A stretch of DNA of 63,511 nt, counting the filler, from Hyphochytrium catenoides (Eukaryota; Protista; Hyphochytriomycota), in assembly GCA_900088475.1 (NCBI GenBank). It is 11 parts of 11 records of this genome, joined end to end, with 100 filler letters (N's around TTAATTAATTAA, not from the genome) between each part and the next. Parts side by side here need not be neighbours in the genome. Positions count along the whole stretch, not along the records: positions 17,850 to 34,864 come from FLMG01002875.1; 10 more parts are not named here. One strand, 5' to 3'. Under the pieces are notes generated by a model. The model saw nothing but the letters and a program-made list of their open reading frames with translations, searched no databases and had not been told where the DNA came from. Positions 17,750 through 34,512 of this stretch are shown piece after piece; within the stretch, counting starts at the first letter, position 1, and each line of letters opens with the position of its first letter. The translations under genes and the position numbers were made by a program.

Positions 17750-17879
17750 NNNNNNNNNNNNNNNNNNNNNNNNNNNNNNNNNNNNNNNNNNNNTTAATTA
17801 ATTAANNNNNNNNNNNNNNNNNNNNNNNNNNNNNNNNNNNNNNNNNNNNGGAATTGAGTTGAGCGATGATGAACTTATT

Positions 17880-17965
17880 TGCAATAAGGGACATCATCAG
17901 CAGTAAAGGAAGAATCATCGTCAATCTTCTTAGCAGTAACAAGGGGAGAACGAGGGGGAGGAGGT
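17880..17965 (-). mobile_element. Short degenerate 3' fragment of CRE-like retrotransposon
   Basis: catcatcagcagtaaaggaagaatcat...aaggggagaacgag matches the family 3' segment at 24100-24170. Confidence 0.45.
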
Positions 17966-18279
17966 CTGTTTTTCACTTTCACTTCATGAATTTCTCTACT
18001 TTATAGACAGAAGTAGAAAAAGAAGAGGTAAAAAAGGAAGAAGAACAACAAGAAAGACGAGAACAAGAGGCAGAAGAAGGAGAAGAAGAAGAGAAATGAA
18101 GAGGAGACATTATGCAATCAACAAAAAGGCACTAAAACAGTAATTAAAAAATAAGCCTTATTTTTATAGACACTAGAAATCATTCTGAAAGGATACACTT
18201 TTTTTTTATATTTCAACGACACACATTTTAACTGTTTAGCCCTCTTTTTACTTGTTTATAGCTACTACTAATATCTACT

Positions 18280-18530
18280 AAGAAGATGAGAGAAGATGAA
18301 GAAGGAAAAGAGAAAGAAAAGAGGAAGAAGAAGAGAAAAGAAAAGCCTATTATAAAGCCTTGGGCTCTTCCTCACCAGCTCGATTTGCTCCATGTTCATC
18401 ATCAGTAAAGGAAGACAGAGTTGATTCCCTCAGTAATGATAAGCGGAGAAGAGGGAGGAGGGGGAGATGAGATGAATCACCAGCCAGCAGCCATCCCGTC
18501 ACCAACGAGCTCAGCCGTCGCAAGATAAGC
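18280..18530 (-). mobile_element. 3' end of CRE-like retrotransposon with (TTC)-rich tail
   Basis: Encodes ...SSFTDDEHGANRAGEEEPKAL*; shares cgagctcagccgtcgc and catcatcagtaaa with 55445-55630; GAA-rich run at 18281-18345 on the + strand. Confidence 0.65.
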
Positions 18531-18955
18531 TTAAGCTTTCTTCCTATTATTGTACCGTTTTCTCTTATTAGCACTAGTTCTACTATTTTAGGCGCGGTCT
18601 ATTTCTGCTTTCGGTGCTCCTAACTCCGTTCCTACCGGTACGCACGGATCTTTTGAGACTGTCCACTAGTTCCGTATTGGGGCACCGCCTTTTTTCGGTC
18701 ATGTTCTTTTTTGTTATGGTTGAGTACGGAGTATTTACGGAGACTGGTTACTTGTGCTCTTTATTTTCTCCGGTATCTTTTGCTTCTTTCGGTACTGCAC
18801 AAGTGTTAGTGATGGAGGAGCAGAGGCGAGCCAGAGCCAGGGAAGATTTGATGTTGAAGAGCCAGAGATATTGTTTTTTTTTGTTGAGAAATTAGACCGA
18901 GAAAAAAATTATAATTATAGAGGGCGAGAGAGAGAGAGAGAATAGCCCATAAAAA

Positions 18956-19002
<47 letters not shown>

Positions 19003-20764
19003 CAGAGACGCCAGAGAAAGAATAGAGAGACGTTCATCTTGAGGAAAGACAGAGTGGGTGGTGGCGAAAGAATGAAGAGAAGGGGAAGATCGCCAAGTGA
19101 CGACATGATGATGAAGAACGACTAAGACTCTCTCTCGCTTTATTACTAGAACTACTATTCTCCCAACCAACAGGAGCATTTTCTCTCTTTCTTTAATCGC
19201 TCCGGTCTCGAACCTTGATGATGCTTTGGACTTGCTCCGCAGGTTCTTCTGCTCTGTCTCTTCTTCTGCAACCGCCTTCTCCAATCCTTTGCTCCTCCTG
19301 TTATTACCTCCACTGGTGATGGAGGAGAAGCGAGGCAGAGAGCCAGAGAAGACAAGCATGATAAGCAAGAAGATAAGCATTGAAGAGCCAGAAAGATTAC
19401 TTTCTAACGGAACAACTAGACAGAAAAAGAACATATGAAGAAAGAGAGAGAGGAGGTAGAAAGAGAAAACGACAAAAGAGAAAAACGACAGAATAGAGAG
19501 GCGAGAGATCACGAGTACTAGGAAAAGATATTGTGCGAAGAGAGAGCAACCAGAGGGGGAGATGCCGTGAGAGAGCGAGAAGTCATAGAGGAGAGACAGA
19601 GAGCCATGGAAGGAAGAAAGCCAGAGTTGGTGGTCGGAAAAAACAAAGACAGGGGAAACCGCGAGCAGCAAAGCGGAACACAAGGAAGGAGACGATTATT
19701 AGGAGTGACAAGAAGGAGGAGAAGCGGGGGTAAGCTAGACACCCGTTCATTGCCCCTATCCTCGGCTCTCTCTCTCTGTTTCTCTCTCTTTCTCTCGCTC
19801 GCTCTCGTTCTCTGTCTGTTTTATGAAAATACCATCACGGAACTCTCTCCTTGTCCTTCCTCTTCCTCCGTTCTCGTTGCATGATGATGCTGCTGCCCCG
19901 TCTTCTTCTGCAATTGCCTCCTCGTCCACTCGTCTGATTCTCCTGTTGTTCTCCTCTGTCCCAGACAGTCTTGGCAGCACTGGATGATGCAGTCTTTAGA
20001 GGAGAGAGCTTTCTTTTTCTTCCTCCCTCCCAAGAATCCCCTAATCTACTGAACACTTCTTCCTCCATTGTCACCTTACGTCCTCCTTTTCCCCTGGTTG
20101 TCTGGCTCTCTCCGGCGCGAGCTCCTAATCTGATGGCGGTGTCCGGCTCAAAAAAAGAAGAGAAGAAAGGGCTGATCTTTCCTGACCATCCATCATCCTG
20201 ATGGTATCTTCTCCTCCCTCTTGTCCGTTCCCTATTGCTTGTTTCTTTCCTCTTCTTCGGTGATTCCTCCGACCACTTGTCCTCTGAGTGCTTTGATGAT
20301 CTTCTTCCTCCCTTTCCTCAGGCTCTTTCTTCTTCTTCTCTACCACTCATCTCCATCCGTCTCTCATTACCGTCTTCTATGCTACCGCTCCCACACCGCC
20401 CGGTCTGTCTCGGCCGCTCTTCTAACTTTTATGGCTGCGTCCCCTGCTTCTCTCCTACTACCACGGTCTCTTTCTGTCGCATCCTCTCTCTGTTCGTGCT
20501 TACGCATCCACATTTCTCTCCTCTCTGTCCTCTCTGCCTCGTGCACTCTTCTACTGCCCTCAAGAAGAAAGCTGAAGAAGATGTTGGATCTTTGTCAACT
20601 CATTGCACAATTTCCTCTGATAATAAGAGAGACCTTAGAGTCACCACGAGGCACAGCGCGCGCCATCTGTTGTTCTCTTCCCTCTGCTCTCTTCTCTCTC
20701 CCTCTCTCTTTCTCCCCTTTTGGCGCGTTGACGCTGTGTAGCGCTTCATTATCAGGCAGCAAGG

Positions 20765-21628
20765 ATGATCAACGCAACTCTGTCGCTGAGAAGCTCTTTA
20801 GCTAAAACTTTCTTTCTTCTGTTTCTCTCTTCTATGCTTACTTCTACAGCTACTGCACGGACACAAAGTGCTGAAAAGTTAGGAGAACAGCGTTCACTCT
20901 CTCTTCATAAATATCAGATTGTCTTCTCACCTTCCGTTGGCGGCAACTCCTTCTCTCACCTTGAGAACCGGCGGTCACTGGCGTTCAGGACACCACAAGC
21001 AGTACCAAAAGCACCAGGGTCCCCAGAGGTTGTCAGAGCCACCACCATCCGAGGCGGGACGAGAGCAACTGGGACGCATACGGCACCTTATATCAAGAGC
21101 ATGGCAGAGCGACGGCAAAGAAAGGCAGGAAAAGGTGAAGCTTTACCAGGCGGACCCAAGGTAGATCTATTCTACGAAATCCACCCCGGAGTAGACCCGC
21201 GATCAGCGCCAGCAGTACCAAAGGATGCACCAGGAGCAGCATTGAAAGAAGATCAAATCGTCGATAAATCTCATCCAGAAGCCGTCAGACCATCTGCCAA
21301 AGTAGCAGAAGTTGTTCCAGCAGCTGTCAACCTAGCCGTCCGGCCACCGGCGCCACAAACGAAGCAGCTAGCTGCCTCAGCAAACGGCGCACCAGCACAA
21401 TTGAACGATTTATTCTTCAGAACTCATCCAGCCGTCCGGCCACGGGCGCCACAAACGGAGCAGCTAGCTGCCTCAGCAAACGGCGCACCAGCACAATTGA
21501 ACGATTTATTCTTCAGAACTCATCCAGCCGTCCGGGCATTGCCGCCACAAGCGAGGAGGCTAGACGCCCCAGCAAACGGCGCACGCGCAGCAGCAGTGCA
21601 GGGCGAGTTACAGAAGAAAGATGTTTGA
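20765..21628 (+). CDS. Intronless orphan secreted-like Ala/Pro-rich protein with 32-aa tandem repeats (287 aa)
   Basis: ATG ORF; hydrophobic TFFLLFLSSMLTSTATA signal-like segment; internal repeats. Confidence 0.7.
   Translation: MINATLSLRSSLAKTFFLLFLSSMLTSTATARTQSAEKLGEQRSLSLHKYQIVFSPSVGGNSFSHLENRRSLAFRTPQAVPKAPGSPEVVRATTIRGGTRATGTHTAPYIKSMAERRQRKAGKGEALPGGPKVDLFYEIHPGVDPRSAPAVPKDAPGAALKEDQIVDKSHPEAVRPSAKVAEVVPAAVNLAVRPPAPQTKQLAASANGAPAQLNDLFFRTHPAVRPRAPQTEQLAASANGAPAQLNDLFFRTHPAVRALPPQARRLDAPANGARAAAVQGELQKKDV
21335..21587 (+). repeat. 96-bp coding tandem repeat, ~2.6 copies
   Basis: Units start at 21335, 21431 and 21527; they encode AVRP.APQT.QLAASANGAPAQLNDLFFRTHP. Confidence 0.9.
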
Positions 21629-23079
21629 AGAGACAGAGAAGTTAAAGACAATGAACGAGGAACCTTCAGAAAGAATGCTCGATTTCATCTCTCAGCTCCT
21701 TCGTCATGTGAGGCTCTATTATTAGAAGGTAGCTTTTTCTTGAGAACGGAGTAGTCCTCACTGAGCTAGAGGACACCTCTTTCCCGCAGGGCGTCCAGCT
21801 CTAATTATATCTGCTCTTTTACCTGCTAACTTCACAGTCTCCTTTTCTTCCTTTTTTCAACTAAGAATCGCCACGCACCTTCTTCTATTTTCCAGAGTCT
21901 TCCTCACCAGCGGGATAGGAAGAACAGAAGTGCGATAAGGGGACAAAGGTGGAGATAAAGAGAGTCATAGAGAGTAGATATTGCCTAGAGAAGACGAGGA
22001 TAATCCTTCTCTTCTGTCCGTGGTGGCTGGTCACGAAGCCGAACCAGGACAGCCTTTGCTTGCCTGTCGCAGATGCCCTACGTCCAGCCATGTCCTTCTA
22101 CCTACTGTTCTTCTCTTCCCTCTTTCCTGGCGTAGTACCTCTGCCACTACCACCATCAGTTACTCTCTTGGTGCTATCCATACTTCTTAACGACCGATCG
22201 TGAAAGTCCTAGTAAGAGCTATCTTTGTTCCGTCTTCTCACCTCAGAGACATGAGAGATAGAAAGACGCCCTCATGATGGCGTGCAAATGAGTTCTTGGG
22301 CATCAGAGGGTTCAACTGCTGCTGATGCAGGAGGATGTCTTCTCCTCTAATGCATCTTCATCGCCTATAACGCGGTAGAGGAGGAACACAATCTACCAGC
22401 TCGCCAAGATAGTGGAAGGTGGATTTGCCAGACGCGGAGAGAAGAAGAGATATTCTTTATTATTATCTAAAAGATGCTAAAGGAGAAGAATGAAGACTTC
22501 TTCTTCCAAGAGTTCTCTCCTCGTACCTCTTGTCTCTTGACTTCTTCGTCTTCTCGATCCCTCCTCGTCCTTCTCCTTCCTCTCCCTTTTCAATCTTTCT
22601 TTCTCCTCAAACTATGGCACAACTAGGACATCCACCGATAGCTTGCTGTTAGTGCGAAAGAGCTAAGTGATGACTTCCACATCCTTCCTCCTCCTCGCCA
22701 CCATCAACATCTCTAAAAGAAAGGCTGATCAAAAGGTCTAGAGACGAGAAAAGTAAGGGGAAGGCAGGAAACAACTCTCTCTTCTCCTCAGCATTTTGGA
22801 TGATTCTTTCTTTCCTTCTCTGCGCAGCGAGTGAGGATGGGTTTGTTGGTTGTCTCTGGTCCTTTTTCCCTATTAGCATAAAACTTGCTAAGGCAGTCAA
22901 GTGTGAATCATCTCTTCTCTGATGATGGTGCTCGGGGGGGAGAGGGAGAGAGAAGGGAGGAGGTTAAGAAAGACTTTATTGCTGTCTTTAACGTTTTCCT
23001 CTATCTTCTCTTTCTTCATCTATCATGTCTCCTCTTTCCCTTTCCTTCTTCTTTTGACTCCTAGACATATGAAGAAATA

Positions 23080-23900
23080 ATAAGCCGTGTACAAGACCTC
23101 CTCTTCCATGCTTTTCGGGACTCTGCTCTCAAAGTCCCCGCGAACCTCGCCACCATTCTTTCGGGCTCCAATCAGAAGCCTGGAGATTTGTTGGTTCGTG
23201 GCTTCTCAACTTGTTATCAGCAAACGGCCTTTGATGATGTGTCCGTCAGTCACGGACTCGCTGTAATCCAGAACCCTTCCTTGTGCAGCAATTCCATGCC
23301 GATTATCAAGGAAGTTTGTCTGAGATAGCGAAGTTGAGGAAGTACGACGAGGGTCCCTGCCCGGCTGTGGGGCTGCAGTTTGTGCCACTCGTCTGGGAGG
23401 GAGGAGTCTTTTGGTGGAGCTATGCCGCGTGTTCTGGACTGTGTGGAACAACTTGTTGTGAAGCTCTCATCAGTGTGATCGTGGCGCTCTGGATCCTTGA
23501 CGGCATTATGGTCATTGGTCTCGGTTGGCCATGGAGAAAATGCGCTTCATTCTTTCTGACGCGTAGTTTCTCGTCAGCGGACCCTGCTCTTGCTTGTTGC
23601 CTGCTGGTTGAGCATAATGATGGTCCCGCTGTTTTTATCACCTTCTCCCACTACTCCTCCTTTTTTTCCTGTTGTTATTACATAGGAAATTGACTATTAT
23701 GATTCTCCTTTCTCTCATACCGCGCGTGAAGAAGAAGAAGGTAGTAGAGTTGATGATGAAGAAGACACCAAGGCTCAATAGCTCATGTTGTCTCTTCTCC
23801 TTCGTCTTCCTCTTCGACTTCTTCTCTTTCTTCTCTTTATAGTTCTATCTTCTTCGTTCTCTTTCTTCTTCTTCTTCGATTCTTGTTCTTCTCTTGCGTG
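23080..23900 (+). mobile_element. Degenerate 5'-truncated CRE-like retrotransposon (RLE domain, acidic tail, TTC-rich end)
   Basis: Frameshifted pieces RVQDLLFHAFRDSAL / SGSNQKPGDLLVRGFSTCYQQTAFD.VSVSH / EIAKLRKY...GLQFVPLVWE align by eye to the RLE at 54366-54988; ...VDDEEDTKAQ* is followed by TTC-rich 23790-23895. Confidence 0.75.
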
Positions 23901-23964
23901 GAATTAGTCCATAATACGTTATTATAACGTTAGGGTTAGCTTTTAATGGCTATAGCAGCTACTA

Positions 23965-24335
23965 CTCAGAAGAAGAGGGGGTAGAAGAAGAAAAAGCAGA
24001 AGAAGAAGAAGATGAAGGAGAAAAACAGGAAGAAGAGGACGAAGAAGAGACAACGAAAAGCTGTAAGCCATGATCTCGTCCTCAGCTCGATCTCCTCCAC
24101 GTTCATCATCAGTAAAGGAAGAAGAACCATAGCTGATCTCCTCAATACTAATAAGGGGAGAACGAGAAGGAGGAGGAGGAGGTGAACCACCATCACCAAC
24201 AATGTCATCGCGAGGCAATCAAGAGAACAGTCCAACTGATCAAGAGGAATACGCTTCTTCAGACTCTGAAGCACATTTTCTTCATGAATTGCCAGAGAGA
24301 CTCTCATGTGAAGGCCTGAAGCCATGGTCAACCAG
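23965..24335 (-). mobile_element. 3' end of CRE-like retrotransposon, tail-to-tail with the previous copy
   Basis: VSLAIHEENVLQSLKKRIP (compare VSLALHEEAARMIVSRL), then GGSPPPPPSRSPLISIEEISYGSSSFTDDERG, then a TTC-rich tail. Confidence 0.75.
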
Positions 24336-24463
24336 CACCATTATTGACCAACAAGATGCCGAGAAGCATCAAGAGAAGAAGAGCGGTCACACTGAAGCTT
24401 CACCAGGTGTCCGACACAATCAACAATTTTCTACTCCGTACAGAAGTATAAAAAGTCATAAGA

Positions 24464-25130
24464 GTGAGAGGTGATAGGGTCTCGCCACGTAGAATTATTG
24501 TGCCTAAATAGATGTTTATAAAACTGAACGGCAAAACATAAGAAAGTTTCATAGAAGAAAAGGAATGAAGAAGAAGATGGAAAGAGGGTAGGAATAATAG
24601 AAGTTAATCCTTTTCGACCGTCTCTACTACTACGACCAAGACTACGACTACTGTTTTATTTCTTAAGAAAAGAGAGGAATACACTTTTCCAAATAAAAGT
24701 GAGAGGTGACAGGGTCTCGCCGCCTTAGAAATATTGACAAAAATATGAATGTTTTATGGAATGAATGCAAAACATAAAAAGCTCCATAGGAGAAAAGGAA
24801 TAAAGATCAAAGCTGAAAGAGGGTAGGAATAGAAGTTCATTCTCTACGACCGTCTCTACTACGACTACTGTATTATAAAAAATATAATGTAAAGAGTGGA
24901 ATACACTTCTTCTTCTTATTCTAATAAAAAAGTGAGAGGTGATAGGGTCTCGCCACATAGAACTATATTGTCCTAAAGAGATGTTTTATAAAATGAATGC
25001 AACCATAAAAAAGTTTCATAGAAGAAAAGGAATAAAGAAGAAGATGGAAAGAGGGTAGGAATAGAAGTTCACCTCTACGACCGTCTCTACTACTACGACT
25101 ACTGTTTTGTATAAAAAAAGAGAGGAATAC
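24464..25130. repeat. ~234-bp tandem repeat, ~2.9 diverged copies
   Basis: gtgagaggtgayagggtctcgcc starts at 24464, 24699 and 24932; shared internal gaaagagggtaggaata and cgaccgtctctactac...ggaatac. Confidence 0.9.
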
Positions 25131-26362
25131 CGGTAGGTACGGGCGGGTTCCTTAGCCGTGTTCTCTTCATGGCTTGGCCGCCAGCCGCCTCGCCCCGCCT
25201 CATCTTCTCTAAAATAACATAACATTTCCTCCTCGTCTACTCTGCAACTTGACTAAAGCCATTTATTTAGCGCTTATTAGTGCTGGGACTGAGGTGAGGG
25301 AACTTCGAACTGAGTCTGATCAACAGAAAGCCATCGGTTCCTTTTTAGCCTTGCTTTTGCTGAACCGGAGTGACTAGCTCCCTTGGACCCGTAAAAACAT
25401 AGGGATTTTATTATAGAAAAAGGCAAGAAAGAACTGAATTTGTTCAGCTCGAGGCTGTTGTCTGGTGGTTGTTTCCTAGTAATAGAACTATTAGTAGTCA
25501 CAGGGAAGTAGACGGACCAAGCAGAAGAGACAGAAGAAGAGGCAAGAATAGAGTCAGAGGAGACAAAGCTGGAGACGACACCAGACAGCTGTACAATTCA
25601 CCATCACCAGACGTCATCGGAGAGACGATGCCAGGACACACTACGGAGGCGGAGCGGACTGGGTAGTAAGACGAAGAAGAAGTGGATGATGCTAGAGACG
25701 AGAGCCGGAAGAGATTGATAGGTCCAGACTGAGAGAGAGAGGGGGACATTTCCGAGACTGAAGAGAGAAGAGGGACTTGGATGTGCACTGGCTAGATTAA
25801 ACATCAAGAGACGACGAGCCACATACGGACAAGGATCAAGCTGTTATATTTCTAAATTTTGGGCCTCTCTCTCCCTTTCCTACGCATTCCGGGCATCCTT
25901 TGCACGTCTTTCCTCCTGGTTGTTATTGCATCCCTCCTTCCTCTACCAGCTAACGTCATCTACTCCTCGCCCTACGTTTTGCCGGGCGAGCTTAATCTCC
26001 TTCAACTTCCTTCCCCTATTCCGTCTCTCTCACCAAAGCAAGCTTTGCTTTTTGGCCGTCTCTGTCTTGCACAGATACTCTAGTCTCTATGCTACCGCAC
26101 ATGACGGCAGCTACTGCTCCGTGCAGGGACTGGGCGGTAGCATCTAGATCTGCCTTCTCGCTCTCCTCTGTCTTACCGCTGGCTATCAAGCTTCTATTCT
26201 CTCACAGTCACTTTTTCCAGGGCTGTTCATCATCATAAATATTACTTAGGAACATCGCGGCAGTTTGCCAGCCTTCTTTGCTCTCTACCAATCTCACATT
26301 TGCTTCCTCTTCTGCGCGACTCTACAAGTTGCCGCTGCTGGTCCTTAAGCAGCACGGGATTT

Positions 26363-28411
26363 ATGGCGAGAACGGGGCCTTACAATGGGCTTATGGTCCC
26401 TTGGTGCTTTCTCTTTCTTTGCTTAGCTGCTTCTTCCTTTTTACCTTTCCTTGGGACAGCTACTCCGTCTGCTCTCGTCCCTGAGAGCGGCCAGCAGAGA
26501 TCATCCTCGTCTCCCTCTCTTCCTGCTGTCTCTCACTCAATTCAATCATCTCCCCTAACTCCTTCTTCTTCCTTGTCTTACCTTCGGAAGGAGAGGAAAC
26601 TCTTATCTAAAGCTCCAACAAGGAGAGAAGGAAGCAGAGCGTTGTCCGGAAGGCGAGGCGGGGGACAGCATGCTAATGCACATCCGGGTATCTCTCGCGT
26701 CAAAGGGCCCAGAACAGAGGGAAAGAATATCAGAAAGCGCCATCCTGGTAGCTCTCCCGTCAAACGGACCAGAACAGCGAGAACGAGGATCAGAAAGCAC
26801 CATCCTCAGGCACCTTTGACTATTAAACGGACGGGACAGAACCCGCAGCAACGCGATGTGAGAGACCCAGTACTTGGGCAAACCGACGACTTCGAAGCGC
26901 TTCTCTCAAATCTCTTTAGGTCCGATAGCCCGAGAGCTACTTCTGCTCCGGATCCTATCGAAGATGCTCTCCGGGTAACGGACCCGTCAAAGCTTTCATT
27001 GGACACACAGGACATTCCCGAGCTTCCTCTCGACTTCTATGGCGGTCACAACCATCAGACTGCTGCTGCTGCAGATCCTGGTCACTCTTCTCACACGCAA
27101 CATGCGGGGAGCAAGAGAAAAAACGAACTGCCCTCCGAAGCATCGAACAAAAAGCCCCATCACGGACCAGCAATTGTCGACAACGGCAACCCAGAGGTTG
27201 GACACCAACCTCCTCTTAGAGGAGGAGAGAGAGGGGAAGAGGAAGAAGCCTTCTGGAATCTTCCTAGCGAGGACGAAGAAGGCGGCCTCTTGTCGTATCT
27301 CCTTCAGGATGACAACCTGCCAGGGCACTCTGGAGCTCCTTCCAGATCCGATGATCCGTCCCTCATAAACCCGAAACCCATCGAGGATGTTGATCCTATC
27401 GAAGAACTTCTTATGAATCAAGCGAACACGAGGCTTCCGGGCGACATTGAAGAATCGTTTCAGAAGCTTGACATTCCAGGGCTTCCTCTAGACTTCCCGG
27501 GACCTCAAAGAGGGTTTGATCAAGGCTTGCAAGAAGTCCCTGCCATTCAGGCACAGAAAGGGATGAAGGCTGATGCGGACCCCGAAGGAATCGCACCAAG
27601 AGATGGAGGAGGAGCTGCTGAGTCACAGCCTGATATCCTGGGGCAAATGGCAGCTACTCAGATGCGACTGGATGCCTTTCTGGCTCATACGCCTGATCCT
27701 CAAAGTGTCCCCAAGGGGGCCGGGCGGCAGGCCAAGGAGTTGATAGAACGACGACAACAGTTAGAAGCTAGGTTGAAGCAAGAAGCCATTAACAGGATTG
27801 AAAGGTCATCTTCTAAGCTAAAAGATCCGAGTATGTCCAGGCCTGATCTAGTTTGGAAGGAAATTGGTACGATCCTGTCTGAGCATGAGAAGATGCTGGA
27901 GTATCTACCAAAGAGGCGTCGTTATCAGACTTTGGCAGACTTTGAGGAGCTTATCTCTAAATATTCGCCACAGGATATCACGGCGTACCTCACCCAGACC
28001 AAGCAGTGGAGCGTAGACTTTAGAGAGAGTATTGTGAAGCTTGCGGAGAGGATTCAAATCGAGAGCAAGTACTCCAGTCGTCTTCTCCGTAAGTTCCTGG
28101 AGCTCCAGGAGAGAGAGAGAAGCCACAACCTCAGGGTGGTTCCCAAAGAGGCAGAGAGACCAACTGTCAAGCAGTTGGAGGAGGAGTGGAAACGACAGCA
28201 AGCCCAGAGAGATCAAATGAGTACGATGCTGGACACGCTGGAACGCTGGGAAAGCGAGGCGCTCTTGAAAGGTTCAAAGACAGACGACCGCGCGAAGTCA
28301 CAAAATAAGCTGCTGCAGACAGTTGTCCGCAGAGCCAACTGGGAGGCCGGGATGCGGTCAAAGAGCGCTAAAGGCGCTTGGGAAAAGGCAAGGAGAGGAG
28401 AGTTGCCTTAG
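26363..28411 (+). CDS. Intronless orphan secreted-like protein with basic repeats, NLS-like motif, acidic disordered middle and helical C-terminus (~682 aa)
   Basis: 703-codon open frame, first ATG at 26363; hydrophobic WCFLFLCLAASSFLPFLG; internal repeats; no family recognised. Confidence 0.8.
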   Translation: MARTGPYNGLMVPWCFLFLCLAASSFLPFLGTATPSALVPESGQQRSSSSPSLPAVSHSIQSSPLTPSSSLSYLRKERKLLSKAPTRREGSRALSGRRGGGQHANAHPGISRVKGPRTEGKNIRKRHPGSSPVKRTRTARTRIRKHHPQAPLTIKRTGQNPQQRDVRDPVLGQTDDFEALLSNLFRSDSPRATSAPDPIEDALRVTDPSKLSLDTQDIPELPLDFYGGHNHQTAAAADPGHSSHTQHAGSKRKNELPSEASNKKPHHGPAIVDNGNPEVGHQPPLRGGERGEEEEAFWNLPSEDEEGGLLSYLLQDDNLPGHSGAPSRSDDPSLINPKPIEDVDPIEELLMNQANTRLPGDIEESFQKLDIPGLPLDFPGPQRGFDQGLQEVPAIQAQKGMKADADPEGIAPRDGGGAAESQPDILGQMAATQMRLDAFLAHTPDPQSVPKGAGRQAKELIERRQQLEARLKQEAINRIERSSSKLKDPSMSRPDLVWKEIGTILSEHEKMLEYLPKRRRYQTLADFEELISKYSPQDITAYLTQTKQWSVDFRESIVKLAERIQIESKYSSRLLRKFLELQERERSHNLRVVPKEAERPTVKQLEEEWKRQQAQRDQMSTMLDTLERWESEALLKGSKTDDRAKSQNKLLQTVVRRANWEAGMRSKSAKGAWEKARRGELP

Positions 28412-29039
28412 CGAAGAATAGAGTCACTTTGTGTATGATTATACGGGTGATACTTCACGTTGTACTATGGCTGCGTCTATCGCACTCTCTTTCTTCATCT
28501 CACCATCACGTGCTAGTTTAGAAAATTGTGAATTGCATATCTCCTTTCTCTCTTGACCTCTCCGTCTCTCCTCGGCAGCGAGTCTTAGTACTAGAGAACA
28601 AGGACTTAGTAGTGGTCCTTCTTCCTCTCCCGCCAACGTGACTCTTTCTTTTATATTAGCTTTTCATAGAGGTTGGGATCTCCCAAGCGAAGGAATTTGG
28701 TGCATTCCAGCACTAATCGATGCGTCCACGTAGGATAATAAGATATTAACAGGCAATGATGATGGTGCTTGGGGAAGAGCAGCTGGTAGGACCTACCTCT
28801 CAGATAATAAGTGAAACAAAACAGCAGGAAAAGGTCACCAAACGAAGGGCTGGGTACAATCCTATCTCTGTTCATCAGCTCCCTCGGTCGTTGTACATCT
28901 ATCATATCTTCAAAGTTGGGAGAGGATGGTGCGGTCAATGCTGAACAGAGCAGACGCCGCGAAGGCTAGATGGGTTTACTACTATCTATTACGTTATCCT
29001 CATCAACCAACTCGTTTACCCTGTATTCCTCCGGTTTAA

Positions 29040-29165
29040 CAAGAAGAGCAGGAGCGGTAGATGATGCGCCGAGGACATTATTGTCATCAACATACCTGAC
29101 GAGGCAAGCAAATGAAGGGTTCAGCTGCAAGAGGAATATGCTTCAGAATCTGAAGCGCATTTTTT
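29040..29165 (-). mobile_element. Inverted short fragment of the CRE-like 3' region
   Basis: caagaggaatatgcttcagaatctgaagcgcatttt matches 24241-24280 and is the reverse complement of the segment at ~29440-29510. Confidence 0.55.
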
Positions 29166-29726
29166 ATATCAAAGGTCGTTTGTCTGAAAAAGTAAAGCTG
29201 AAGAAGTATGAGGCTCCTTGTAAGGCTGTAGGGCTGCAGTGTTCCCCGCTAGTTTTGGAGTCGTCTGGGAGAGCATTGCCGAATGTCGTTGATAGTGTAA
29301 GACATCTGGTGGTGAAGCTTCCGTGTGACCGCTCTTTCTGCTCTTGATGCTTCTGTCTCGGCATCTTAGTCAGTGGTCCCGTTTGGCCATGGCTTCACGC
29401 CTTCATCACACGAGAACCTCTAAGGCGATTCATGAAGGACATGCACTTCAGATTCTGAAAAAACGTATTCCGCTAAAGCAGCTGGGCATTTCGCTTGCTG
29501 CTCGCTTGCCTCGCGGCGGTTGATGATAAGGGCATTGTGGTTGGTGGCTCTTCTCCTCTTCCTCCTCGTTGTCCCCTTAACGTTACTACTGAGGAGATCA
29601 GCTATGATTCTTCCTTAAGTGATGATGAGTGTGGAGGAGATCAAGGTGAGGATGAGACCAAGCCGTTATAGCTTTTCTTGTCTCTTCTTCTTCTTCCTCT
29701 TTCTCTTCCTCTTCTTCTTCTTTTTT
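29165..29726 (+). mobile_element. Degenerate 5'-truncated CRE-like retrotransposon
   Basis: EKVKLKKYEAPCKAVGLQCSPLVLESSG...IHEGHALQILKKRIP...TTEEISYDSSLSDDECGGDQGEDETKPL*, followed by a TTC-rich tail. Confidence 0.75.
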
Positions 29727-31476
29727 GCTATGGAATAGAGTTTAATACTTCCTTTTAGAAAGTAAAAGGTCAATAAACAGCATAAGAAGAAGAATATCTA
29801 TAAAATTAGAAGGACCGCCAACATTACTCGCTTTATCTACAAAAGAAAGCTAAGCCAATGCATAAAGATACCCAGCGTAAAAAAACGACCAGAGCTATAG
29901 CAAAATAAAAGAGACAGGCGGGACCAATAAAATAAAGGCATCGGGTGAAAAAGAGCTAGAGGGTGTACCGAATCTAATGGCCCACGAAAAAGGAAGAGAA
30001 GGACCGAGAACTAGAAAAGACGGACAGAAACTAAATAGAAGAAGATGCAGAGAAGGAGAAAGAAGCACGGAAGAGAGAGAGGACAAGGGGAAACAAGAGG
30101 ACGGAGGAAGAGAGCTTGAAGTGAGGAGACAGAGTGTGTATAGCAGAAATTAGCGCTACCGTTTTACGCTTTTTACTGTAGAAAGAGACGGGACAATTTA
30201 AAAGCGAAACAGTAGTGGCAATCACTAAATAAATAAGGAGAGAGGAGGAAACTATAGAAGGAGAGAGACAGAAGTTCTAAAGGCAAGAGGGAGGAAAAGA
30301 TATATGGAGAGAGAGACAAATCGAGAGAGAGCCAGACAGAGCCAGGGTAGGAGAAGATTGACTTCCTCTCTTCATGATTGTGAAGGTAGTGCTACACAGC
30401 TCGCGTTGAAGAAAAGATGTAGATTCCTCTTTTCCTCTCGTCGAATGGGCAACAGACATTCCGGTTCCTCCGAGTGACGAAAGAAGACAGCAAGAGAGGA
30501 GAGAGAGAACGAGGGGAGAGAGAAAGAGAGAGTAGGAGAGAGAGAGAGAGAGAGTGGGAGGGAGGGAAAGACAGAGAGAGAGAGAGCAGTATCAAGCCAG
30601 GAGTGAGCATAATACGACAGAAAACAGCTACGAAAGACAGAAGAAGAGAAGCCGGTCGATGCCAATAATTTAAGGGACGCGGATCTTCAACATGGAAACG
30701 AGAAGAGCAACAGAGCAATGATGCGGAGTGTCTTTCTTTTCTCTTCCACGTCTTTTTCTTGCCCATTGTAGCCTGCCCTACTTGTCGTTCGTACCTGCCC
30801 TTCTTGTCTTTCGTACCTCTCCCCGGTCGTTCCTTCAATTTTTTCACAAGACTCTCTCTCTGTCGTGCCTCTCTTCTCTCTCTCTCCTGTCTCTTCCTCT
30901 CCCGTTTTCTCTCTCTCTACACACTCTCTCTCTCTCCACTCCCCCTTCTCTCTCTGGCCTCTCCTTCTCTCTCTTGGTCCTCTTCTCTCTGCTTTCTGTA
31001 AAAACTCCTTCCTCGGTAGTAATTGAGTCTCAGGACCTTTTACTAATATTTTGAGGAAAAGAACTTTGCCGCTTTGCTCGCCCTTCTCTCTTTCTCTTTC
31101 TCTTTTTCGCTCTCTCTCCCTCTCTCTCGCTCTCTCTCGCTCCCTCTCTCTCTCTCTCTCTCTCTCTCTTCTTTTTCTGTTCTCTAATGAGCGTTTGCAT
31201 TGTCCTCTCATCTCCTGCAGGTCAAAAATGTTCTTTCTTCTTCCCCCAAAAAGGAAGTGGATGGCTTGACCTTCTCCCCCGCCGCGCCGGTCCATCCCGT
31301 CCTGCTGCTGTCATTATACGTTGTAAGAAGTCCGTCACTCTCTCTCCTCTCTCCCTCCACGCGCGCGGCACCAATCTCCCTCTTCTCCTACTGGTTAAGA
31401 AAGGAATCTGACTGTCTCCTCTCTCCCTCATCATTTCGCTCTCATAAAGCACTTAAGAGTGTTCTTTGTGAAGAAG

Positions 31477-32445
31477 ATGGGCGGCGTGTTGGCAGTGTCT
31501 CTCCTCCAGTCCTTCCCTCTTTTTTCATTCTTCCTGGTCCTAGGGTTGTCTCTCTTGGTCTCTCCCTTGGACGGCAGCGTGATTACCGCTGTGCAAGGAA
31601 AGACTCAGACAACTTCTTCTTCTCCTCTCTTCTCTCCTTCTCTCTCGATCGCTGCAGCGTCTCCAGTCCCGGCATTGCGCGCCTCTCTTCGTCTTCGAGA
31701 AAGGCATCTCTTCTCCCTACGATCCGAAGCACGGAGGCCAAGATATGCTGAGGAAAGGGTTGACCAGAGAAGTGAAGAAAACCTAGAGAGAACAGAGAGA
31801 GGGACAGTGGCAGGAGAGAAGAGAGCTCTTTCAGGAAGGTTGGGATGGAGAGCAGCAGGATATCTTCTTGTACAAGGCAACCAACCCTCGCATCCTCTCT
31901 CCCCAGCGGGGAAGAGGGCGAATACTCCTTCCGTGAATGATCCTGCAGTTTCTCGTTTCCTTGATAGACACAAGGCCAGCAGCCAAAATAGAGAAGTGAA
32001 AGGACAACCAGCAGTGTCAGGAGATGCAGCGCAAGGAAGAGAAACAAATGTTAACGAGCAGTATCGGAAGCAGCAGCAGCAGAAGAAGGAGAAAGAGCTC
32101 AACAACGCCATGAAAGAAGGGCAACAAGCAGAGAAGACACAGAATAATGAGTTCCTGCGCCCTCTCTCTCAGAAGGAACAGCAGGAGAGTGGAGAGCCAG
32201 TCAGTGTCCCATCTTGGCTGAAATATAGCACAGCAGGAGCAGCAAGAGGAGAGACACAGATTTGGACAGCAGCGCACAACCTTCGAAAGGCTGCTCTTCG
32301 GCAAGCAGCGCTTCAGGGACTTAAGGACCGTAGAGAGGAACTGAGCTGGAGAGAGTTTTCTCAGAGGATAGCGTCGGGACTTGAGGAGAAAGGAGGAAGA
32401 GAAGTACCAGATTTCCCGTCTTTTGAAGAAGGAGGGCAGAAATAG
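31477..32445 (+). CDS. Intronless orphan secreted-like protein (~322 aa)
   Basis: Open frame with first ATG at 31477; hydrophobic FPLFSFFLVLGLSLLVSP; Gln/Glu/Lys-rich helical C-terminal half. Confidence 0.65.
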   Translation: MGGVLAVSLLQSFPLFSFFLVLGLSLLVSPLDGSVITAVQGKTQTTSSSPLFSPSLSIAAASPVPALRASLRLRERHLFSLRSEARRPRYAEERVDQRSEENLERTERGTVAGEKRALSGRLGWRAAGYLLVQGNQPSHPLSPAGKRANTPSVNDPAVSRFLDRHKASSQNREVKGQPAVSGDAAQGRETNVNEQYRKQQQQKKEKELNNAMKEGQQAEKTQNNEFLRPLSQKEQQESGEPVSVPSWLKYSTAGAARGETQIWTAAHNLRKAALRQAALQGLKDRREELSWREFSQRIASGLEEKGGREVPDFPSFEEGGQK

Positions 32446-32513
32446 AGGTGTACCATGGTAGGGACGCACGCTGAAAGAGAAAGAGAGAAGACATGCGCGA
32501 CTTCCCCCTCTTC

Positions 32514-32554
<41 letters not shown>

Positions 32555-32555
32555 C

Positions 32556-32593
<38 letters not shown>

Positions 32594-32820
32594 GTTCCCT
32601 CTATTGTCTTGCCTTCTTCCTCGTCCAACACTTGGTCTCTCTTTCTCTCTTTCTGAAGGAAGGAGGTTGGGCAGAGAAAGATAGGGGACGGCTTGAGGCT
32701 AACCGTGGCGGAGTGATAACGAAAACTTCTGATCCAAAGCCATAGCCTCCGCATTTTCTGTTGAGTAACAACAAGGAAGAAAGAAAGAATGAAGGAGAGA
32801 GAGAGAGAGAGGCAGAGAAA

Positions 32821-32893
32821 GAGAGAGGGAGTAACGAGAGAGAGGGAGTAACGAGAGAGAGGGAGTAACGAGAGAGAGGGAGTAACGAGAGAA
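32821..32893. repeat. 17-bp minisatellite (GGGAGTAACGAGAGAGA) x4
   Basis: Seen directly. Confidence 0.9.
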
Positions 32894-33484
32894 AGGGAGA
32901 AAAGAGAGAGAGAAAAAGATGCCAAAATTGTAGCTAAGGAGAGTCACTTTCTGCAAAACTCTTCTCTGCAGCAATGCGCTTGAAGGAGAGAAGAGAAAAG
33001 GTGATAAGAAAAAGAAACTTTCTCCTTCTCGATGACGGACAAAAGCCAGGACAAAAAAAAAAGAGAGAGAGAGAGAGAAACCACTGCTTCTTTTTTCTAA
33101 TGAATTGTCTACCACTGAAGGAGAGAGAGAAGAGGAAGGTGGCTATGGAGGAGCTCTTCTTACCTCCTATGGGTCTTGAGATGAAAGCCTGTTCGTGGTG
33201 AGAGACAAGGCAACAAAACGAGAGGGAACGGGGGAGAGAAATCGGGAGAGAGAGAGAGAGACCAGAGGCATAGACTACTGGTCATTATATTTCTAGATGG
33301 CTGCCCACCTAAGCCATTCGACATGCTTTTACATGATGTCATTCACTCACTCGCGCTTCCTCTCTTCCCCTCTTTCTCTCTTTCTCTCTCTTTCTCTCTC
33401 TCTCTTTCTCTCTCTCTCTCCCTCTTTCTCTCTCTCTCTCCCTCTTTCTCTTTCTCTCTCTCTCTTTCTCTCTCTCTCCCTCTT

Positions 33485-33515
<31 letters not shown>

Positions 33516-33763
33516 TTCTCTCTCTTCCTCACTCTTTCTCACTCTTCCTCACTCTTTCTCACTCTTCCTCACTCTTCCTCTCTCTTTCTCTCTCTTCCTC
33601 ACTCTCTTTCTCTCTCTCTCTCTCCCTGTCTTTCTCTTTGTCTTTCTTGGTCCCTCTTTCAGTTCTGATGTTATAAATAGTTCACCAGTCGTTGTTGGAG
33701 AGAAACCGTTAACGCTGTCGTCAACAGGCTGAAGTTTGAAGACAGCCAGTGAGAACGAAAGAA

Positions 33764-33798
<35 letters not shown>

Positions 33799-34512
33799 AA
33801 GAGAAAGGAGGAAGAAAGAAGCCCCCAACAAACAAAAGGAAGAAGAGGAAGAACCCAAAGCAGCAGCGAAACATAAGGCAGCCATAATATATCCTGGCTG
33901 TCGGTCCAGCAGAAGAGAAACTGATACTCCGGGACCAGGAAGAGAAAGGCGTCTTGCGACCCAAATGCCGCGAGACGAAAAGGAGGAGAGAGGGGATGAG
34001 AAGCTGCTACTGTCAGACAGAGGGAAGACAGAGAGACAGGAGTCTAGCAGGGGAGAAGAGACACCTTGGGAGCGAGTGAGTGGAAAGTCGCCGCGCGAGA
34101 GAGGGAGAGAGAGAGGGAGAGAGAGAGAGAGACATATCCCATACCAAGGTCGTAAGGGGTCGAGGTAGTATAGAAAGGGACAAACGGGACAAGAGTTCAT
34201 ATTATTGTAGAGAAAGAGAGAGAGAGGAGGGAGAAAGAGAAGAGCACGGAGGAGAAGACTGCCAGGAAAGAGGCGAGAGAGGATGGCCCCGTAAGCACTA
34301 CGCAAGACAGAGAGAAGGAAAAGGGCAGAGAGAGAGAGCGAGAAGAAAGCGAAGCGAACAGGAGTGCCAAACGAAAAAGCACTGAAAATACACTGAGCGA
34401 GGAGAGCGAGAAGGGACGACAAAAAAGGCAGAGAGCGCGAGTGAAGAGGAAGAGAGAGGAACGAAAAGGGCATGAGGAAAAGAGAGAGCAGACGAAGAGA
34501 GAGAAACAGAGC

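Follow-up and report, generated by a model that had tools for sequence, protein, structure and literature searches.

In oomycete RxLR effectors the motif lies approximately 30-60 residues beyond the signal peptide, and dEER often comes next. In the two apicomplexan systems closest to this layout the motif is a protease site: plasmepsin V requires RxLxE/Q/D (PEXEL) (PMC4764566, PMC8540915), and ASP5 of Toxoplasma strictly needs Arg in P3 as well as in P2, with Leu in P1, i.e. RRL (PMC4764566). Here we analyse three adjacent open reading frames (ORFs), O1, O2 and O3, of Hyphochytrium catenoides (assembly GCA_900088475.1). They lie in a window, the whole stretch of DNA presented (63,511 nucleotides in 11 joined parts), of which positions 17850-34864 (the FLMG01002875.1 part, ~17 kb) were examined; all positions are those of the window. 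A first-pass annotation had proposed these ORFs, and one outside this piece, as an undescribed class of secreted proteins with its own basic N-terminal motif and the layout of RxLR, PEXEL and TEXEL effectors. We read O1-O3 as a cluster of single-copy, co-oriented, fast-evolving, lineage-restricted and mostly disordered secreted proteins, each with one uninterrupted ORF, and give this reading a probability of roughly 0.55.

Three uninterrupted reading frames with a coding signal

All three ORFs were found where the first-pass annotation had placed them, uninterrupted and on the plus strand (Table 1). They are co-oriented and separated by 5.6 kb (O1-O2) and 5.1 kb (O2-O3). The piece has a G+C content of ~48% and abundant CT/GA and AGA/TCT microsatellites.

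Sequence statistics favour a coding function for O1, O2 and O3. The period-3 signal relative to background was 8.7-11.6 in O1, 6.4-8.6 in the body of O2 and 3.1-3.8 in O3, the weakest of the three. Outside the ORFs it was ~1 in most of the piece and rose to 3.6 at triplet microsatellites; the spacers between O1, O2 and O3 held no further convincing coding signal. The codon-position profile was alike in the three ORFs (first position G 0.31-0.36, T 0.14-0.16). Moreover, chance opening of frames of 287-682 codons would be very unlikely without selection at ~50% G+C. Contig depth placed O1-O3 at single-copy level, while the repeats in the spacers were 10-40 times deeper.

Signal-like N-termini

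The signal-peptide calls are heuristic, made from hydropathy, charge and agreement with the -3/-1 rule only. The most hydrophobic segment of O1, O2 and O3 was located in the first 35 residues, directly after the first ATG, with hydropathy maxima at residues 12, 16 and 15 respectively; a rough estimate puts the probability that all three would lie there by chance at about 4e-4. The hydropathy scan revealed no second hydrophobic segment in any of them, and in the 682 residues of O2 the only windows above 1.6 were those starting at residues 9-16. The start of O1 appears to have a textbook signal-peptide layout. The earlier claim of a hydrophobic signal-like segment in each ORF was therefore borne out for O1-O3, within this heuristic.

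No relatives in the searches made

No Pfam family was found for O1, O2 or O3 at E values up to 1, and neither a word-index protein search nor a PDB sequence search with the three proteins gave a match. With O2 as query, phmmer (HMMER) returned 0 matches among 1.84 billion cluster representatives, and a tblastn-confirmed scan of metagenome contigs returned none. A search of the ESM Atlas by features gave no match for the C-terminal part of O2 or for O3, and Foldseek, run against the PDB with the O2 C-terminal model, found no similar fold (best E 0.5). The Rfam scan was empty. The orphan status proposed for these proteins was thus upheld in the searches made. The exact O1-O3 protein sequences were absent from protein collections, and the source genome therefore seems to be unannotated there.

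Variation within the ORFs

The public runs holding the stretch were three DNA runs of one study, with no RNA run. Variants were differences between the contigs of these runs; 40 of 107 were listed, and the figures are rough. The listed variants comprised 5 synonymous and 9 replacement changes in O2, and 1 synonymous and 7 replacement changes in O3. Listed substitutions in the ORFs totalled 6 silent and 16 replacement, an approximately neutral ratio, and the proteins would therefore be under weak or diversifying constraint. None of the listed variants created a stop in an ORF. The only well-supported indel within any ORF was 3 nucleotides long (behind 32156, in O3), while spacer indels measured 1, 2, 3 and 4 nucleotides. 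On this rough count, O1-O3 are fast-evolving genes in which the frame is kept.

Many variants were present at approximately half depth in both DNA samples, and were clustered (e.g. 28615-28656, 28971 and 29368-29373). This suggests a diploid heterozygote or a stable mixture of two haplotypes, and weighs somewhat against a clonal haploid.

A probable diverged N-terminal leader of O1 and O2 and the question of one family

The strings quoted in the first-pass annotation were found as SHLENRRSL (O1, from residue 64), SSSLSYLRKERKLL (O2, from residue 68) and RASLRLRERHLF (O3, from residue 68), together with EGSRALSGR at residue 89 of O2 and GEKRALSGR at residue 113 of O3. Two others, GKRALPS and SSSLRRGERKEKRREL, occurred in no frame of positions 17850-34864 and presumably belong to the annotated ORF outside this piece.

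It is unlikely, in our view, that O1-O3 and genes elsewhere make up one effector-like family, marked by a conserved leader in which a basic element, S-x-L-x3-R-x-L, lies ~40 residues beyond the signal peptide. Under this explanation the element would direct protease cleavage or sorting but differ from PEXEL, TEXEL and RxLR, with C-terminal parts varying freely behind it. R-x-L was indeed present at residues 70, 78 and 76 of O1, O2 and O3; 0.7-2% of shuffles had an R-x-L in each protein at positions no more than 9 residues apart (P 0.007-0.02, for a motif picked post hoc). All three sites follow the ungapped register S-[HYL]-[LR]-x-x-[RE]-R-x-L, and only three R-x-L occur in the 682 residues of O2, two of them at residues 78 and 92. 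In O2 and O3 the site is followed, 14 to 40 residues on, by RALSGR, for which the two genes use partly different codons; an exact shared 6-mer was obtained in about 2% of shuffles for O2-O3 and in 4.5% for any pair. The C-terminal parts gave pairwise P values of 0.39-0.71, as this explanation would have it and in agreement with the unrelated C-termini described in the annotation. The composition of the upstream regions was also alike for the three genes.

The similarity of the N-termini was less uniform. Local alignments behind the signal, compared with global shuffles, gave P 0.015 for O1-O2, 0.036 for O2-O3 and 0.57 for O1-O3. Block shuffles within 12 or 20 residues keep the local composition, including a gradient from Ser-rich to basic. 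Against these, residues 1-140 of O1 and O2 scored 64 compared to 36 ± 7 (P 0.001-0.003), but O2-O3 (P 0.2-0.44) and O1-O3 (P 0.4-0.5) did not rise above the null. The O1-O2 alignment was collinear over 112 columns, 31 of them identical; it set S-H-L-x3-R-S-L on S-Y-L-x3-R-K-L and continued to a common KAP behind the motif. The leader similarity of this one pair speaks for a family, but the loss of both O3 pairs once local composition is kept speaks against it.

Further points stand against a single family. The motif was chosen post hoc and carries little information. When the three proteins were searched without bias for their best ungapped three-way block, the result was a different string, GEQRSLS (O1, residue 40), GQQRSSS (O2, residue 43) and GEKRALS (O3, residue 113), at a non-equivalent position in O3; the motif of the annotation was therefore not recovered by unbiased search. 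The Ser/Pro-rich spacer ascribed to each protein was present in O2 (58% Ser + Pro + Thr in residues 33-70) and O3 (45%) but not in O1 (24%, the same as in the whole O1 protein). At the DNA level, the gene units resembled each other only through dispersed repeats.

To judge from this alignment, O1 and O2 probably go back to a common N-terminal leader of ~120 residues, now very diverged. What O3 has in common with them is the layout and two short strings, not enough to call it a relative, and the statistical support for a common processing motif is marginal. As for the proposed single class, N-terminal similarity beyond local composition was seen only between O1 and O2.

Weighing the readings

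A second explanation, which we also find improbable, is that O1-O3 are three unrelated adjacent orphan secreted proteins, whose shared features beyond the signal arose by chance in disorder rich in Arg, Ser and Leu. These residues each make up 7-11% of O1-O3, no pairwise BLASTP match was significant, two of the three pairs stayed at the block-shuffle null and the single coincidences reached only P 0.01-0.05, post hoc. The collinear O1-O2 alignment (P 0.001-0.003 with local composition kept) weighs against chance, and several independent weak coincidences agree in direction. Moreover, the genes are clustered, co-oriented and share their upstream layout.

That at least one ORF, most likely O3, is a decaying or never-translated frame and no functional gene is highly improbable. 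In its favour, the replacement-to-silent ratio is close to neutral expectation, variant density in the ORFs looks like that of the spacers in the partial variant list (40 of 107), O3 has the weakest period-3 signal and is overlapped by long antisense ORFs, the runs are DNA only and O1-O3 are without relatives. Against it, selection would almost certainly be needed to keep frames of 287, 322 and 682 codons open at ~50% G+C, all three have a codon-position composition of the coding type, each hydrophobic start falls exactly at the first ATG and the sole well-supported ORF indel keeps the frame.

Several points also weigh against a cluster of fast-evolving secreted proteins with a partly shared leader. 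The O1-O2 P value of 0.001-0.003 comes from six pair-by-region tests and is uncorrected, and BLASTP linked O1 and O2 only at E about 0.1 in a three-protein database. The replacement-to-silent ratio of ~16:6 is about the expectation for unconstrained sequence, for the 40 of 107 variants listed. The signal peptides are putative calls from hydropathy, charge and the -3/-1 rule. O3 has no basic n-region, and its hydrophobic run is long enough for a membrane anchor; because no basic residue precedes ~25 hydrophobic residues, this start could serve as a signal peptide or as a signal anchor. Given the polypyrimidine-AG sites ahead of all three ATGs, introns in the 5' part or a further coding exon upstream are conceivable, especially for O2, whose frame, opening at 26300 in the ORF call, is open for 74 codons ahead of the first ATG at 26363. 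Finally, the lack of relatives may partly reflect an unannotated lineage.

Anatomy of the proteins

Single-sequence AlphaFold models (predicted local distance difference test score, pLDDT, 62-64) are of low confidence and were read only for "helical" and "disordered". We take O1-O3 to be mostly disordered proteins. The Ala/Pro-rich O1 carries 2.6 in-frame copies of a 32-residue repeat at its end. The order of elements in O2 is signal, Ser/Pro/Thr spacer, basic motif, RALSGR, basic repeat, acidic middle and helical C-terminus. Its strongly basic repeat resembles a nuclear-localisation signal in sequence. The two acidic repeat copies of O2 aligned with a score of 60, compared to 34 ± 6 in shuffles (P 0.0015). 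The low-confidence model of O3 comprised a helix at residues 4-27, a disordered stretch at 29-62 and isolated helices behind it.

Table 1. Positions of the ORFs, their N-terminal and internal elements and the upstream tracts (window coordinates; pTM, predicted template modelling score).
Feature	Positions	Strand	Residues	Remarks
O1, likely coding sequence	20765-21628	+	287 in total	putative secreted Ala/Pro-rich protein
O1 signal-peptide-like start	20765..20860	+	1-32	R9/K14, hydrophobic FFLLFLSSML, ATA/RT with small residues at -3/-1
O1 motif SHLENRRSL	20954..20980	+	64-72	R-x-L at 70-72
O1 tandem repeat	21334..21584	+		in-frame, 96 nucleotides (32 residues), 2.6 copies, 91% alike
O1 RRLDA	21554..21568	+	264-268	sole RRLxx in O1-O3, near C-terminus
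O2, likely coding sequence	26363-28411 (from ATG)	+	682 in total	putative secreted modular protein
O2 signal-peptide-like start	26363..26464	+	1-34	R3, 19-residue hydrophobic core VPWCFLFLCLAASSFLPFL, GTA/TP
O2 motif SYLRKERKL	26576..26602	+	72-80	R-x-L at 78-80
O2 RALSGR	26636..26653	+	92-97	
O2 basic 20-residue repeat, HPG..VK..RT....IRK.HP	26681..26806	+		two copies, 60-nucleotide period, 83%; net charge +8 to +11 per 30 residues
O2 acidic repeat, copy 1, DPIED...DIPELPLDF	26927..27043	+	189-227	
O2 acidic repeat, copy 2, DPIEE...DIPGLPLDF	27368..27502	+	336-380	
O2 C-terminal all-helical region (modelled)	27635..28408	+	425-682	258 residues, nine helices, mean pLDDT 64, pTM 0.35: low confidence
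O3, likely coding sequence	31477-32445 (from ATG)	+	322 in total	putative secreted or membrane-anchored protein
O3 hydrophobic start	31477..31575	+	1-33	~25 hydrophobic residues, no basic residue ahead
O3 motif SLRLRERHL	31684..31710	+	70-78	R-x-L at 76-78
O3 RALSGR	31822..31839	+	116-121	3 of 6 codons differ from O2 copy
Pyrimidine-rich tract upstream of O1	19765..20764	+		purine-rich tract before it
Pyrimidine-rich tract upstream of O2	25763..26362	+		purine-rich tract before it
Pyrimidine-rich tract upstream of O3	30677..31476	+		purine-rich tract before it

Upstream tracts and spacer repeats

The strand layout ahead of O1, O2 and O3 was alike (18700-20960, 24360-26560 and 29680-31680 respectively). 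On the plus strand, the A+G fraction was 0.6-0.8 (purine-rich) from about -2000 to -900, and 0.21-0.43 (pyrimidine-rich) from about -900 through the signal-coding part. The switch near -900 could mark the transcript start, followed by a long pyrimidine-rich 5' leader. The only upstream DNA words common to the three genes were CT-rich ones. WGAGACG was present in 14 copies in the piece, compared to 7.4 expected, and this excess is probably a by-product of the purine/pyrimidine tracts. Five AGAGACG / CGTCTCT copies were located within 450 nucleotides at 25621-26063, 300-740 nucleotides upstream of the O2 start. TGCATGCA was absent from the piece.

Tandem duplication of whole gene units was considered and rejected: self-BLASTN linked only dispersed spacer repeats and detected no similarity among the ORFs or among their upstream regions. 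Dispersed multi-copy repeats were located at 18281-18482, 23304-23534, 23995-24424, 29167-29392, 29288-29729 and 30900-31100. They are 67-76% alike within the piece, with one pair inverted, and many loose contig ends lead to other copies. No Pfam domain was found in ORFs overlapping these repeats. At 24458-25130, a ~235-nucleotide tandem repeat of nearly three copies (74-82% alike) was detected by BLASTN but not by Tandem Repeats Finder. A homopyrimidine microsatellite of ~300 nucleotides (CTCTTTCTCT, ~29 copies) occupies 33356-33660, with a purine-rich flank up to the end of the piece; the low-complexity ORFs crossing it are unlikely to be genes.

Proposed route and meaning

If O1-O3 are a cluster of orphan secreted proteins, as we favour, they would enter the endoplasmic reticulum co-translationally through the predicted N-terminal signal and would be released as soluble, largely disordered proteins. 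We infer secretion, the signal cleavage site and a single-exon transcript for each. Should the R-x-L at residues 70-80 be used, a protease of the plasmepsin V / ASP5 type would cleave after Leu; processing at this site is a tentative idea and rather unlikely. For an organism living as an intracellular parasite, O2 with its basic repeats and its pair of acidic linear motifs would suit the part of a host-directed effector, a suggestion drawn from resemblance only.

A more ambitious proposal, and a distinctly more doubtful one, makes S-x-L-x3-R-x-L (residues 64-80) a genuine signal for maturation or export in an unstudied lineage, and a third version of the principle behind PEXEL and TEXEL. The cut after Leu would then be made by a plasmepsin V / ASP5-type protease that is less strict about P2 and P2', and O1-O3 would be three members of a large family of single-exon effectors that begin with this element and cannot otherwise be aligned. 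Were the leader and its R-x-L a real processing signal, the secreted effectors of a poorly studied organism could be listed by sequence, and a new motif variant would be added to PEXEL/TEXEL-type export. As it stands, the locus shows a familiar pattern, that of clustered, fast-evolving orphan secretory genes. It yields three candidate secreted proteins, O2 being the most structured and testable, together with a falsifiable motif hypothesis.

Comparison with PEXEL, TEXEL, GRA and RxLR systems

The first-pass annotation had likened the layout of O1-O3 to that of PEXEL, TEXEL and oomycete RxLR effectors; the motif of O1-O3 falls outside all three definitions. The pentamers at the N-terminal sites are RSLAF (O1), RKLLS (O2) and RHLFS (O3), and they therefore fit neither the PEXEL nor the TEXEL definition.

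As in Plasmodium PEXEL proteins, O1-O3 have a hydrophobic, heuristically called entry signal for the endoplasmic reticulum and an R-x-L ~40 residues after the presumed signal cleavage; their bodies are disordered, repeat-bearing and lineage-specific, and their genes are clustered. Unlike in PEXEL, the pentamer ends in F in O1 and in S in O2 and O3 rather than in E/Q/D (the only RxLx[EQD] in O1-O3 is RPLSQ at residue 228 of O3), and O1-O3 have no sequence similarity to any known protein.

With the Toxoplasma TEXEL proteins, i.e. dense-granule (GRA) effectors, O1-O3 share uninterrupted ORFs, a signal-like start, intrinsic disorder and internal repeats. The basic, nuclear-localisation-like stretch of O2 may be a further likeness, to GRA effectors of the host nucleus. 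By contrast, the N-terminal sites read RSL, RKL and RHL, with no RRL there, and the sole RRL (residue 264 of O1) is about what chance would give (by a rough estimate, about one in 1291 residues of such composition). Searches with O1-O3 gave no Pfam match (E up to 1) and no homologue that would place them in a described GRA family.

Oomycete RxLR-dEER effectors differ from O1-O3 in the motif itself: R-x-L-R is absent from the first 570 residues of O1-O3, the single match of the R.LR regular expression being at residue 573 of O2, and there is no dEER. In common with them, O1-O3 show a putative signal peptide, a short basic motif and variable C-terminal parts, and come from clustered genes that are probably intron-poor. 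While members of none of these groups, O1-O3 appear from their sequences to be at least laid out like effectors of the PEXEL, TEXEL and RxLR type.

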